A stretch of DNA of 64,000 nucleotides from assembly GCF_032191835.1 (NCBI RefSeq), contig NC_083239.1:56792001-56856000 (forward strand). The letters are read 5' to 3'. Of the stretch, positions 3,601 through 39,830 are shown one piece after another. Numbering within the stretch: the stretch's first letter is position 1; every line of letters starts with the position of its first letter. The DNA comes from Heteronotia binoei (lineage: Eukaryota). Position numbers and translations under genes: made by a program. The notes under the pieces were generated by a model. The model was not told the DNA's origin. It worked only from the letters and a program-made list of their open reading frames with translations, and did not search any database.

Positions 3601-6600
3601 AGGAAGGAACGAGGTGTCTTGTCCCCAGGGCTTTCGGAGGCAGAACGGCTCCTGCGTGGGTGAGTGGGCGGGGGCCTGCGTGGCTCTCCGGTTCTTCCCC
3701 GGGAGGGGGGCTCTCTTGTCATCCCCATTCCCCCGTGCCCCCCCAGCCTTCTGTCTGTCCCCCTCCCCACCTGCCAGATATTGACGAGTGCCAGGAGAGG
3801 CTGTACTGCCGCAGCAACGGGGATTGCACCAACACCCGCGGCAGCTTCGCCTGCCTTTGCCACGAGGGCTACATCCTGGACTCCTCCCGCAGCAGCTGCA
3901 TCTGTGAGTGCCCATCCCTCCCCCCCCCCTGGCCAGGCTGGGCAAGTGCTGCCCCCTGATGTCTGCTGCTGGTAGCGACCCCCAAACCTCCTTGGCCCAC
4001 GTCGGACCGTGGGATTGGGTTTTTCTTGTTTCTCATCAGCTAACCTTCTCCCGACCTCTGGCTGGCCGGCAGGGTGGAGGGAGATGTCAGAAGTCCCAGC
4101 AGCCTGAAGTCTGGGCAGAGACTAGATAAGAATCACAGAAGCATCAAAGAATCACGCAGAGCTGGCAGGGACCATAGAGGCCATCTAGTCCAGCCCCCCA
4201 TCCAAGGCAGGATCAGCCTTCATTGCCAGGACAGCAAAACCGATCCTGTGTGCTGATCCTGTGTGATGGTTTTTGTCTGCGTCAAATGTACAATTGAGAA
4301 ATAACGAGAGAGAGGTTCTTGTGGAACAGATCTGGGCCTCCCTACCCCCAAACTGGAGGTGTTCGGTACTTGCCCACTCCATCTGACCAACAACGTGCAT
4401 CGTGGCTGAAGGGACCCAGGCCCCGGCAGGGAAGCGGCTTCCCACAGCCAGCCAGTGAATTCTGATCCCAGCCCCGCCTCCCACGCAGGAAGGGGCTCAT
4501 CTGCTTCAGAATTGGGGAGGGCAGAGAAGGTTGCCAGGCTCCAGAGGGGCACTGAAGCCTTGGATCTGAAAAAATTGGCTGCCTTCTGCCCTTAAGGGGT
4601 TTGTTTTACCTGTTCCTGAAGGAAGGGGGGAACATGAAGCATTTCAGCTTCAAAGAGGAGGTATAAAGAGTCTCCCCACCACGCTGCTTTGGTGTGGGAA
4701 AACAGGTCAGGGGAGAGAGGTGATGTGATCACCATCCTCAGGTACTTGGAGGGCTGCCCTGTAGAGGATGGTGCAGAATTGTTTTCTGTGGCCCCAGAAG
4801 GCAGGACCAGAACCAAAGGATTGAAATTAAATCAGGAGAGTTTCCGACTCAACATTAGGAAGAACTTCCTGACCATTAGAGCGATTCCTCAGTGGAACAG
4901 GCTTCCTCCTTGGGAGGTGGTGGGCTCTCCTTCCTTGGAGGTTTTTAAACAGAGGCTAGATGGCCATCTGACAGCGATGAAGATCCTGTGAATTTAGGGG
5001 GAGGTGTTTGTTAGTTTCCTGCATTGTGAAGGGGGTTGGACTAGATGACCGTGGAGGTCCCTTCCAACTCTAGGATTCTGTGATTCTTCAGGAGGTGGTG
5101 GGCTCTCCTTCCTTGGAGGTTTTTAAACAGATGGCCATCTGACAGCAATGAAGATCCTGTGAATTTGTGGGGAGGCATTTGTGGGTTTCCTGAATTGTGC
5201 AGGGGGTTGGACTAGATGACCCTGGAGGTCCCTTCCAACTCTAGGATTCTATGAAAGGAGCCCCCCCCCCAGCAGTGTTCTGGGGCTGTCTGGGCTCTCA
5301 TTTATGTGTTCAAAGCTGTGTGGCTATGGGGAACATGGACCCAACTTATACAACCCCCCAGTGTGGAATTTCAAGGCCCTTCACCTTCTCAAATTACACC
5401 TGCTTCCTGCAAGCAGGGCAGCCCCCCCCCCCCCCCCATCTGAAGAAAAGGCAAACACATCGCTTATTTTATTGTCTGCCTTGCTGAGCTGCTGTGCCCT
5501 CTTCCAGCGGCCTTCTTTCCCTCTGTTTCTGGCTGCAAACGGGCAGTCCTTCGGTGCCATTCTGGGTTCCGTGGGCTAAGTGCAGAGTCTGCTTGCCGTC
5601 AGATGTGAGTGGGTGTCTCTGTGTTCCATTGAGCCCCTTGTTCACAAGATGTGAACTTGCAGCCTCCTGGCAGTGGGCCCAGGGTGCGAGTTCTAGCCCC
5701 CTGTTGTGCTGGGGAATGGCTCGGGGTGTCATTGTGGTTTTCTCACAGTTTCCCAGTCTGAGCTCCCTATTGGTAAAATCGGAAGAATGGAACCCCCGCC
5801 CCATTGGGCAGTTGGAGGGGGGGCAAGGGGGTCCTGATTGGGCCCTTTGTGGGTGAAAGGGGGGCCTGAATGCTGAGCAGCCCCGCGGGGGGGGGGGGGC
5901 CCTGAGGCCTGCCCCTCCTCCCTCTCCCTGCCTCTTTCTCCGCAGCCCACCACGTCATCTCGGAGGCCAAAGGGCCCTGCTTCCGGGTGCTGCGGGAGGG
6001 GGGCTGCTCCCTGCCCATCCTCCGCAACATCACCAAGCAGATCTGCTGCTGCAGCCGGGTGGGCAAGGCCTGGGGGCACGGCTGCGAAGGCTGCCCACCT
6101 TTTGGCTCAGGTGAGGCCCTGCCTGGGCAAGCGGGGGCCGGGAAGGGAAGGGAGGGAGCAGAGCGGCATCTGGGCTGCCGTGGAGCTCCGGCTGGGTGCC
6201 GTAGCAGGCCTGGCGCGGGGGGGGGGGGGGGGGCGCAGGGTCCAAAGCAGTGCTGTGAGTCTTGCCTCCCTTGACAGATGGGTTCAAGGAGATCTGCCCG
6301 GCCGGCCCTGGCTACCATTACTCGGCCTCCGACCTCCGCTTTGACACGCGCTACCTGGGCCAGGACCTGCCCCGCGTACCCGTCAGCCACCAGCCCAGTG
6401 GGCGGGAACCCGTGGCCCGCCTGCCACCCCCCACAGCCCCCCCCCACCCGTACGTCCCCCTCCTCCCTCCCTGGGTGCAAGAAGGCCCCCCAACAGCCAG
6501 CCCCACCCTGGGGCCAGCCTAGCCAGCCCTCCTCCAGCCAGGTGTGGGGGGTAAGGGGGCGGCTTTATTCCCGTGGGGGGGCACAGCACCAGCCTCCCCT

Positions 6601-23900: not shown

Positions 23901-24459
23901 AACAGTCTTCAAGGGCAGCCCCAAGTACAACACACTGCAGTAGTCCAGTCCAGGTTAACTAAGGGGCATGGATCACTGTGGCTAGAGCTGACTGGCCCAG
24001 GAACAGACGCAGCCAGAGCTGGGCAAAGGTGCTCCGAGCCACTGCAGCTGCCTGGTTTCCTATGGTGACCACTGTGTCGAGCAGCACTTCCCAGCTGGCT
24101 TTCCAAGGGGAGTGTAGCCGCATCCAAGGCCGGAGAGTGCTCAGGTCCCAGCTCTGCCTTTTGACTAACCCAGAGGACCCCTCTCTTGTCAGGATTGGCT
24201 TTTCTTCATTCCCATTACCTTTTCTTTGCGCTCACCACCACGAGACCTGAAGCTCTCTTTCCTGGTCAGTCACTGCCAGATCAGAACTTATCCCTATTGT
24301 TAATCCAGTTAAGCTTGGCCCTGAAAGGACACAGTTGCAACCTCCGTTTTGGAACACAATGGATTTCAGACCCTGATTCTGTATTGTTTGCCATCAGAAA
24401 CTTTTGCTGTGGCTGCAGCATTAATCTGTCTGAAGTTAGTGTGGAAGTTCAGTTGAGAG

Positions 24460-25500
24460 TCTCTGGGTAAAAATAAAAGGAGTAGGAAATAACAGTGATA
24501 TTACGATGGGGGTCTGCTATCAACCACCAAGCCAGGCAGAGTTGGACGAGGCACTCCTAGAACAGATTACAAAGTTCTCCGAGAGAAGGGACACAGTGGT
24601 CATGAGAGATTTCAATTACCCGGATATCTGTTGGAAGTCCAACTGTGCTAAAAACAAAAGGTCAGATAAATTCCTGACTTATCTTGCTGACTTCATTTGC
24701 CAGAAAGTGGAGAGGGGAACAAGAGGACCTGCTGTCTTGGACTTGATTCTCACCAACGATGACATACTGGTTGATGAGGTAAAAGAAGGGGGTGCCCTGG
24801 GCAGTTGTTACCAGTGTTCCCTCTAAGCTGAGTTCATGGGAGCCAGCTCACAGACTTTTGCCCTCTGGCTCAAACATTTTTGTCTTAGCTCAGGAAAAAC
24901 AGCCCCAAAGCAAACTAATTTATGCAATAGCTCACAACTTTAATGCTGGGAGCTCACAAAGTAGAATTTTTGTTCACAAGACTACATGGCTTAGAGGGAG
25001 CATTAGTAGTGACCATGTAGTTTTGGAATTTACAGACTTGGAGAAGAGAAAAGCTGCATGTAGTCAGATATAGGCAGGACTTCAGAAAGACAAGCTTCGA
25101 CAAACTTAGAACTATGCTGGGTAAAACCCCCTGGTCAGAAATACTTAGGAGGAAGGGGGTTCAAGAGGGATGGGAGCTTCTTAAAAGCCAAATACTGAAA
25201 GCGCAATCCTATGAGAAGAAAAAATGGAAGAAGCCGAGTTGGCTCCATAAACAGCTCTCTAAAGACTTGAGAAATAAAAAAGACTCTTTTAGGAATTGGA
25301 AGGGGCGTTTTATAACCAAGGATGAATATAAACAAATCCCCAGTGCTTGCAGAGAAAAAGCTAGGAAAGCTAAAGCTCAGTGTGAGTTTAAGCTGCCCAA
25401 AGATGCTAAAAGCAGCAAAAAAGGGTTCTTTTCTTACGTTCAGAGTAAGAAAAAGCAGGGCTATGGCAGGCCCATTGCGAGGAAGCGGAATTGTCACAGG
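24460..25500 (+). mobile_element. CR1 LINE endonuclease/tether fragment, interrupted by a hAT MITE
   Basis: GVCYQPPSQ..VVMRDFNYPDICW..TRGPAVLDLILTN..LGS|SDHVVLEF, then KPSWLHKQL..CREKARKAKAQCEFKL..KGFFSYVQSKK. Confidence 0.85.
24812..25005. mobile_element. hAT-type MITE inserted in the CR1 fragment
   Basis: Imperfect TIRs CAGTGTTCCCTCTAAG and CTTAGAGGGAGCATTA, with a degenerate 8-bp TSD (GTTGTTAC / GTAGTGAC). Removing it restores CR1 GS-SDH. Confidence 0.75.
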
Positions 25501-25877
25501 TGACGAAGTGGGCGGAGCTGCTCAGTTCCTGCTCGTCCTCCGCCTTCCCTTCCGAGGGGAAGGGCGCTCAGCTTCAGCAGGGAATGAAGCGAAGTCCTCC
25601 GGGCCAGAGGCGCTGCTGGCGGTGCACGTGGCCCCGCCTGCAGGAGGCGCTTCCGGCCCCGCCAGGAGGGTTTCCGGCTGCAGGCAACTTCCTGTGGGCG
25701 GGGCTCCGCAGCCGCCCTCCCCTCTGACGGCAGGCAGGCAGGCCGGGCGGAGAGCGCCAGCCAATGCGGGGAGGCCCCGCCCCGTCGCCTAGCAACCGCG
25801 CCCCCGGCCGCCCTCCCCGGACGTGCCTTCCCATTGGCCGAGCGTCCTCCCCCCTTCTCTCTCCCGGAGCAGCAGCC
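25500..25877 (+). promoter_or_regulatory. YIF1B CpG-island promoter
   Basis: CpG-rich region with ETS-like CTTCCGG/ACTTCCTG, CCAAT at about 25760, reverse CCAAT at about 25832, GC boxes and a CTAGCAAC X-box half site. Confidence 0.6.
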
Positions 25878-28047
25878 ATGAGCGGCGGGGCCGGGCCGGG
25901 CCGGGCGCGCGAGTGGGGCGGGGCCTCCGGGGTGGGCGGGGCGTCCCCCTCCGCCAGCCCTGCCAGGGAGGCCGTTCCGACCCCTCCCCCGCCGCAGCTC
26001 CCCGCCGCCTTCGCCGCCGCCTACGGCCCCTCCCTGGCCGCCCACGGCAAGCAGCTCGTCCGCGGGAGCGTGAGTCAGGCCCGCCGGGGGGGAGGGGAGG
26101 GGGGGCGGGGCGGCCCTTGGCCACGCCCCCGCTGACCCCCCCTCTCCCCCCCCAGATCGACCGCTTCGTGCCCCTGAGCAAGCTGAAGTGCTACTTCGCC
26201 GTGGACACCCTCTACGTGGGCAGGAAGCTGGGCCTGCTGCTCTTCCCCTTCCTGCACCAGGTGGGGACGGAGGATGCGCCGCTGGCCTCAGGGGCTGCTC
26301 GTGTGGACCTCCTGGTGCCCCCCCTGGGGTCCCTGGGCTGCTCCTTCAGCTCTGTACCGGCAGGACTGGCAGGTCCACCCTCTACGTGGGCAGGAAGCTG
26401 GGCCTGCTGCTCTTCCCCTTCCTGCACCAGGTGGGGACGGAGGATGCGCCGCTGGCCTCAGGGGCTGCTCGTGTGGACCTCCTGGTGCCCCCCCTGGGGT
26501 CCCTGGGCTGCTCCTTCAGCTCTGTACCGCCAGGACTGGCAGGTCCACCCTCTACGTGGGCAGGAAGCTGGGCCTGCTGCTCTTCCCCTTCCTGCACCAG
26601 GTGGGGACGGAGGATGCGTGGCCTGGCCCCGCTGGTGGACCCCCCTGGGGTCCCTGGGCTGCTCCTTCAGCTCTGTACCGGCAGGACTGGCAGGTCCACC
26701 CTCTACGTGGGCAGGAAGCTGGGCCTGCTGCTCTTCCCCTTCCTGCACCAGGTGGGCTCTGCGGGGGCGGGGGGGGGACCTCCTGACCCAACATGGCCTC
26801 CCCCCCCCCAGCCCGCGATAGGAGGGGTCCCTGGGCTGCTCCTTCAGCTCTGTGCTCCCATCTCTATCAGCAGGACTGGCAGGTCCACTACCAGCAGGAC
26901 ACCCCCGTGGCTCCCCGCTTTGACGTCAATGCCCCGGACCTCTACATTCCAGGTACCCCCCCCCCCCCACCGCCAGGGCCTGCTTCTGCTGCTGGTCCAC
27001 CCCGTCTGCCCAGAGAGGCTTGCTCAGCGATGCTAATGCCCCGTGTTCCTCCTCCGCAGTGATGGCCTTCCTCACCTACATCCTGGTGGCAGGGCTGGCC
27101 CTGGGGACGCAGGACAGGTGAGGCCCTCCCGTCAGCCTCTCTGCTGGGATCCCTGGGAGAGGGGAAGGGCCCGGCCAGGCCTGCCCAGTGGCATTTCTGG
27201 GCTAGACCCCCTGCCCCACTGTCACTCCCGGAAACTGGGGCTTCCTGGGCCTCCCTGCTCATTGCCCCAAGATGAGGGAGCCTCCCTTCCCCCCCTCCCC
27301 TCCCCATCTCCCACCCCCTGCAGATTCTCCCCCGACCTGCTGGGCTTGCAAGCCAGCTCGGCCCTGGCCTGGCTCATTGTGGAAGTCCTGGCCATTCTCC
27401 TGAGCCTCTACCTCGTGACGGTCAACACGGATTTAACCACCATCGATTTGGTCGCCTTCTCAGGGTACAAATATGTGGGGTGAGTGGGGGGCAGAGCAGC
27501 CGTGGCATAGCCTGTTCTGGAGGGAGGGAGGGTGGGTCAGTCACGGCTGCCTCACTGCCCTTTGGAGCTGATGCGGGGTGGGGGGGGCATGGGACAGGCC
27601 AGAGGTGCTCCCTGATCATCCCCCCCCCCGCTTCCCCCATGCCAGGATGATTGTGGGCCTTGTGGCTGGCCTGCTTTTTGGGAAAATGGGCTACTTCTTG
27701 CTGCTGAGCTGGTGCTGCCTCTCCATCTTTGTCTTCACGGTAAGAACTGGTGTGGGGGTGGGAGACCTGGAAGGCACGACCGGGGCAGGGACCCGCCGCT
27801 CCTCCTTGGTGTTCCCTGCCCGTGCCCACCCACCTTTCACCGCCATCCTTGCCCAGGGCCTGTTCTCAGCCCCCGTTCCTTCCTGCCACAGATTCGGACT
27901 CTGCGCCTGAAGATCCTGTCGGAGGCAGTGGCAGAAGGGGTGTTGGTGCGGGGGGCCAAGAACCAGCTGCGCATGTACCTGACCATGGCTGTGGCCGGCC
28001 TGCAGCCGATTTTCATGTACTGGCTCACTTTCCACCTTGTTCGCTGA
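25878..28047 (+). CDS. YIF1B: Protein YIF1B (Yip1-interacting factor homolog B)
   Basis: Exons 25878-26069, 26156-26260, 26874-26952, 27060-27117, 27324-27479, 27646-27739 and 27892-28047. Peptides: [119 protein letters not shown]. The start codon is uncertain because AG acceptors at 25872 and 25875 could make the first exon internal. Confidence 0.95.
26205..26751 (+). repeat. Tandem array of about 170 bp (about 3.3 copies) fusing an exon end, an intron and the next exon start in YIF1B
   Basis: CTGCACCAG|GTGGG recurs ending at 26260, 26430, 26600 and 26751. Each copy is preceded by CAG|GACTGGCAGGTCCAC. Confidence 0.95.
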
Positions 28048-39139: not shown

Positions 39140-39830
39140 CTGCTGGCTGGGGCAGTGATGCTCTGTATTCTGGGTGTTTGGGGGGGCACAGTGGGAGGCT
39201 TCTGTGTGACACAGAGTGTTGGACTGGAGGGACCAATGCCCTGATCCAACATGGCTTCTCTTATGTCTGGGGCAGTGATGCTCTGTATTATTGGTGCTCA
39301 GGAGGGGCAACAGTGGGAGGGCTTCTAGTGTCCTGGCCCCACTGATGGATGGACCTCCTGATGGCACCTGGTCTTTTTGGCCACTGTGTCTGTGTGACAG
39401 TGTTGGACTGGATGAGCCATTGGCCTGATCCAACAGGGCTTCTCTTATGTTCTTATGTCTGGGGCAGTGATGCTCTGTATTCTTGGTGCTTGTGGGGGGC
39501 ACAGTGGGAGGCTTCTAGTGTCCTGGCCCCACTGGTGGATGGACCTCCTGATAGCCCCTGGGTTTTGACCACTGTGTGACACAGAGTGTTGGACTGGAGG
39601 GGCCATTGCCCTGATCCAACATGGCTTCTCTTATGTCTGGGGCAGCGATGCTCTGTATTATTGGTGCTCAGGAGGGGCAACAGTGGGAGGGCTTCTAGTG
39701 TCCTGGCCCCACTGATGGATGGACCTCCTGATGGCACCTGGTCTTTTTGGCCACTGTGTCTGTGTGACAGAGTGTTGGACTGGATGGGCCACTGGCCTGA
39801 TCCAAGCGGGCTTCTCTGGTGTTCTGATGG
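39140..39830 (+). repeat. Tandem array of four 120-190 bp units ending in CR1 3' tails
   Basis: GGGGCAG(T/C)GATGCTCTGTATT starts at about 39150, 39270, 39460 and 39640. Units end in GTTGGACTGGA..CCTGATCCAAC..CTTCTCTTATG, the reverse complement of the CR1 tail at 45258. Confidence 0.85.

Follow-up and report, generated by a model that had tools for sequence, protein, structure and literature searches.

Within the 64,000-nucleotide stretch of Heteronotia binoei DNA that we analyzed (hereafter the window), the gene YIF1B lies on the plus strand between positions 25878 and 28047. This gene assignment, proposed in an earlier note, held up: exon 2 alone matches the Pfam family YIF1 (PF03878) with 42.4 bits over profile positions 27-61, above the gathering cut-off of 27.6, and the exon model corresponds to the annotated YIF1B protein. 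The model comprises exon 1 (25878-26069, 64 amino acids), exon 2 (26156-26260, 35 codons, phase 0 at both ends), exon 3 (26874-26952, 79 nt), exon 4 (27060-27117), exon 5 (27324-27479), exon 6 (27646-27739) and exon 7 (27892-28047), all on the plus strand. Its translation is exactly XP_060113795.1, "protein YIF1B [Heteronotia binoei]", a protein of 279 amino acids that is the sole YIF1B protein annotated in GCF_032191835.1; it derives from a single model, and its protein cluster has one member. The locus is carried by CM063341.1 (GCA_032191835.1), to which the window is identical from position 24378. At the protein level, H. binoei YIF1B is 90% identical to YIF1B of Paroedura picta.

In this model the junction LHQ/DWQVHY falls at 26260/26874, and the exact agreement of the translation means that the annotation treats everything from 26261 to 26873 (plus strand) as one intron of 613 nt. 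Exon 3 resumes the YIF1 profile at position 62 and follows it to 93; since the profile runs unbroken from 61 to 62 across exons 2 and 3, the native junction requires no insertion. The native acceptor of exon 3 is a tandem CAGCAG (NAGNAG, 26868-26873), of which the annotation takes the downstream AG; a transcript spliced at the upstream AG would encode an additional Gln between LHQ and DWQ. The junction of exons 2 and 3 also differs in a Phrynosoma platyrhinos model, which carries an 11-residue insertion there, and in Eublepharis macularius isoform X2, which lacks QDW, indicating that acceptor choice here varies, or is mis-called, in other squamates.

The first exon also deserves comment. H. 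binoei exon 1 (25878-26069) lacks the KRR..LF(E/D)DTS..FLxxPVSS motifs, which are conserved from fish to birds. The matching Paroedura region (1501-1853 of its locus) consists of two exons separated by a G-rich intron, and the H. binoei exon 1 model seems to run through the corresponding G-rich stretch, with homology returning at PPPQL and AAAYG. The absence of these motifs could reflect either a true in-frame loss or a problem with the model.

Intron 2 and the adjoining exon ends are built from a tandem array. A tandem duplication had been claimed for this part of the gene, and TRF, repeat finding and MAFFT resolved it into four head-to-tail copies at 26206-26888. The repeat unit is made up of the final 55 nt of exon 2, all of intron 2 and the opening 15 nt of exon 3; its exon 2 tail runs from CAC CCTCTACG.. 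through ..CACCAG, and its 15-nt exon 3 head reads GACTGGCAGGTCCAC. TRF reported a period of 170 nt, 2.4 copies and 99% matches over 26206-26618, and the copies are spaced by 170, 170 and 151 nt. Copy 1 (26206-26375, plus strand, 170 nt) contains the real exon 2 tail, a 103-nt intron copy and 15 nt of exon 3 start. Copy 2 (26376-26545, plus strand, 170 nt) differs from copy 1 by one substitution, C at 26530 for G at 26360. Copy 3 (26546-26696, plus strand, 151 nt) has the flanks of copies 1 and 2, with changes confined to interior indels that leave an 84-nt intron copy. Copy 4 (26697-26888, plus strand), the native one, combines a 52-nt exon 2 tail look-alike, a diverged 122-nt intron copy that holds the native acceptor, and the authentic beginning of exon 3. 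The 613-nt composite intron thus contains three pseudo-exons separated by intron copies of 103, 103, 84 and 122 nt, and the extra length contributed by the array is 491 nt. Within the 64-kb window, a 30-mer taken from the unit is confined to the four copies (0 occurrences expected by chance), which shows that the unit is no dispersed repeat. The window also holds other long-period tandem arrays, at 1-615 (134 nt x 4.6), 4913-5254 (171 nt x 2.0) and 39202-39817 (186 nt x 3.3).

We considered whether the array, or its copy number, might be an artefact of assembly, or might be present on only one haplotype of the sequenced animal. The region has a composition that could trouble an assembler, with 69% G+C and homopolymer runs of 7-10, and the chromosome record ends about 120 kb away; in addition, two DNA sequencing runs contained just 12% of the sampled words. 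However, the copies are unequal, with one substitution, a complex indel in copy 3 and a diverged interior in copy 4, which is not what assembly stutter produces, and the extra 491 nt is far below the length of a long read. We therefore regard an artefact or a single-haplotype array as highly improbable.

The joints between copies bear on how the array arose. The earlier note had placed them on a CAC microhomology, and CAC is indeed common to exon 2 (26206-26208) and exon 3 (26886-26888). All three internal joints read ..GGTC CAC CCTC.. and are identical over at least 25 nt. The bases around CAC differ between the two parental sites, and three bases by themselves are weak evidence of microhomology. 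Identical joints that fall on the CAC of both parental sites suggest that the array was founded once and amplified afterwards. One CAC microhomology-mediated event would have duplicated a segment of about 170 nt that begins inside exon 2, includes intron 2 and takes in 15 nt of exon 3, and we infer that unequal exchange or replication slippage then raised the copy number to four.

We compared the array with the YIF1B gene of Paroedura picta, a gekkonid and the closest relative included. Exons 2 and 3 are single-copy in that species, intron 2 measures 515 nt, and TRF found no such repeat in that intron; the array thus originated in the Heteronotia line, after the two had diverged. The array is real and specific to this lineage. 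Its youth is apparent from the copies themselves: copies 1 and 2 show 1 difference in 170 positions, and copies 1-3 are separated by just one substitution plus indels. When the intron copies were aligned locally, one by one, with that of Paroedura, the scores were at the level of shuffled sequences, and the ancestral copy was not distinguishable in this comparison. A 13-mer in copy 3, TGGCCTGGCCCCG (26619-26631), occurs exactly in the Paroedura intron; its score is within the shuffle range and the match is probably due to chance.

Copy 4 has a mixed character. In its exon parts, in the first 5 bases of the intron and in a block of 30 nt ahead of the acceptor, it agrees with copies 1-3 without a mismatch, while its interior is unalignable without many gaps and 12 additional bases stand before the acceptor. 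Against copies 1-3 it shows 0 differences at 67 exonic positions and 2 at about 43 alignable intronic positions, counts too small to separate selection from youth. This mosaic might stem from an older first duplication with later homogenization, or from rapid indel change in the G+C-rich tract with its long runs of G and C.

The duplication left three exon-like segments inside the composite intron, each a chimera of the exon 3 head followed by the exon 2 tail. As had been described, they are preceded by AG and followed by GT, and they are identical 67-mers: pseudo-exon 1 at 26364-26430, pseudo-exon 2 at 26534-26600 and pseudo-exon 3 at 26685-26751, all on the plus strand. An upstream CCTTCAG acceptor extends each to 81 nt, starting at 26350, 26520 and 26671, respectively. 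The frame arithmetic put forward earlier also proved correct. The 81-nt forms are in frame and encode the peptide beginning LCT(G/A) as quoted. The 201 nt of the three pseudo-exons are free of stops in every frame, so inclusion of all three 67-nt copies preserves the frame and adds 201 nt, giving a protein of 346 aa. Inclusion of one or two 67-nt copies shifts the frame, with stops at 26921 in exon 3 and at 27060 in exon 4, respectively. When skipping, the 67-nt form and the 81-nt form are allowed at each of the three positions, 9 of the 27 inclusion patterns are in frame. Retention of intron 2 in the native frame leads to a stop at 26819.

These properties raise the prospect that the pseudo-exons serve as cassette exons, with one or two copies acting as poison exons that send the transcript to NMD, and with three copies, or the 81-nt forms, lengthening the protein. 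Their AG and GT flanks are intact, their donors are that of the real exon 2, their body is authentic exon sequence, and premature stops or intact frames follow from inclusion as set out above. The 201 nt of pseudo-exon are also free of substitutions, although this is expected from youth alone, as the single difference between copies 1 and 2 illustrates. On balance with the acceptor, annotation and conservation data that follow, we judge cassette use to be unlikely.

We next compared the splice signals of the copies. Over at least 18 nt, donors 1-3 share one sequence (CAG/GTGGGGAC), and donor 4 diverges from position +6. The acceptors differ in layout. Past the shared ..CCTTCAGCTCTGT, 8 nt remain before the exon in the pseudo-exons and 20 nt at the native acceptor, a difference that is due to 12 extra pyrimidine-rich bases (26854-26865, plus strand) which the alignment and the acceptor table place before the native acceptor only. 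As a consequence, the A of CCTTCAG stands at -15 from the proximal AG in the pseudo-exons and at -27 at the native 3' splice site. A distance of -27 is usual for a branch-point A. The introns preceding the pseudo-exons are devoid of A from -16 to -55 relative to the proximal AG. By this distance heuristic, 26854-26865 would set a well-placed branch-point A at the native acceptor only. The acceptors of the pseudo-exons are thus predicted to be weaker than the native one, having a polypyrimidine tract shorter by 12 nt and no well-placed branch-point A, and this weakness speaks against cassette use. In copies 1 and 2, a CTCAG at 26286-26290 and again at 26456-26460 could provide the CCTTCAG acceptor with a distal branch site, leading to the in-frame 81-nt form.

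Other features of the array would pull in the opposite direction. Vertebrate splice sites usually pair across introns of 84-122 nt. On sequence alone, the identical donors, the authentic exon sequence and the short intron copies would favor inclusion of the pseudo-exons, or use of the donor nearest the acceptor. Folding of the RNA from 26251 to 26885 gave z = -0.19, a stability no greater than that of shuffled sequences, and so offers no structure that would loop the pseudo-exons out. Rfam returned no match in 25400-26906. Minus-strand open reading frames are present in the region, as expected for G+C-rich DNA, with no sign of a gene there.

To look for products of inclusion, we ran word searches against 5.8 billion proteins, seeded with exon 2 (targets of 188-598 aa and of 55-175 aa) and with the whole of XP_060113795.1. 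No insertion isoform and no array-derived protein was found. The only H. binoei protein recovered in these word searches was the canonical XP_060113795.1, and the fragments of 55-175 aa over the exon 2 region were exclusively genomic ORFs of other species. A HMMER search with the array in the native frame (26261-26818) against 1.84 billion representatives produced 0 hits. These searches of predicted proteins argue against an abundant in-frame isoform and say little on rare or NMD-bound forms. Together with the single annotated isoform, they weigh against the pseudo-exons being used as cassettes.

Conservation at the junction points the same way. Among 14 vertebrate orthologues aligned at the LHQ/DWQ junction, 0 carry an insertion, and the residues on either side hardly change from fish to birds. 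An AlphaFold model of XP_060113795.1, built from a 14-sequence alignment, had a mean pLDDT of 52, too poor to judge how well the protein would tolerate an insertion. Given the near-invariance of this stretch, adding 27-81 residues in frame would probably do harm, which further counts against the longer proteins that cassette use would yield.

We therefore take the three 67-nt pseudo-exons to be, most likely, decoys that are passed over in all or the majority of splicing events, a reading based on the annotated junction. The first donor and the last acceptor of the array are still authentic, so the whole array can be removed as a single intron. According to the annotation, splicing from 26260 to 26874 would do so, excising 613 nt and yielding the canonical 279-aa protein. 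The likely cause of skipping lies in the decoy acceptors, which have neither the 12-nt pyrimidine stretch nor a branch-point A at a suitable distance. If one or two decoys were included through leaky splicing, an early stop would follow and the transcript would be degraded by NMD. Taken together, we think it probable, if by no means certain, that YIF1B in the Heteronotia lineage underwent a young tandem duplication that is neutralized by splicing, the decoys being excised with the intron.

Decoys that are rarely included might still have an effect. They could recruit the splicing machinery and delay excision of the intron, with retention or degradation of a share of the YIF1B pre-mRNA as the result. 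Three extra pairs of donors and acceptors sit in one intron, a retained intron would read into the stop at 26819, and Parra et al. 2018 (PMC6097662) describe a decoy-exon model of this kind. The decoys described there, however, are mostly in introns longer than 1 kb, compared with 613 nt in YIF1B, and the array folds no more stably than its shuffles. Such an effect on intron retention appears very unlikely to us. Like the decoys of that study, the YIF1B units are intronic and exon-like and have both splice sites; the published decoys are described as poorly included and able to bind splicing factors, as conserved, mostly within introns of more than 1 kb (PMC6097662), and as having an effect on retention demonstrated by experiment. 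The YIF1B units, in contrast, are new, confined to one lineage and known here from sequence.

The reading that we prefer, removal of the duplicated material with the intron, has precedents. An intragenic tandem duplication also duplicates splice signals, and use of the outer sites can remove the extra copy and leave the mRNA unchanged (PMC3265369, PMC2891723, PMC4974935). Examples are the Rogers model and the cases of Hellsten et al. 2011 (PMC3265369), Lehmann et al. 2010 (PMC2891723) and the potato RdRp (PMC4974935). YIF1B resembles the Rogers and Hellsten cases in being a short intragenic duplication that, per the annotation, would be spliced from the first donor to the last acceptor. In those cases, however, the duplicated piece is exonic and a new intron appears at an AGGT site, whereas the piece duplicated in YIF1B already spans an intron. 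No intron position was gained; the old intron grew from about 100-120 nt to 613 nt and acquired three pseudo-exons.

A second comparison is with tandem exon duplication, which supplies genes with extra or mutually exclusive exons. The YIF1B array shares with it a local origin and the keeping of splice sites. Classical tandem exon duplication copies a whole exon, whereas the unit here fuses the head of exon 3 to the tail of exon 2. Unlike classical duplicated exons, the unit has a length, 67 nt, that three does not divide, and the annotated protein does not contain it.

A stronger role for the array can be formulated. The decoys might be spliced in at a real level, with copy number varying among sexual and parthenogenetic Heteronotia lineages and either setting the dosage of YIF1B through NMD or adding in-frame 27-residue repeats of a native segment to the protein. 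We hold this to be quite unlikely; if true, it would mean that a coding exon array has been caught at birth. Taken on its own, the array is an ordinary structural variant without a demonstrated effect and not a proven new exon. It is, at the same time, a clean natural example of a gene surviving a duplication across two of its exons by means of its outermost splice sites. The locus also constitutes a natural test of splicing, packing four nearly identical donors and four related acceptors into 700 nt. Its layout could reveal the features that lie behind the choice of the native pair, the candidates here being the 12-nt pyrimidine stretch and the distance to the branch point.
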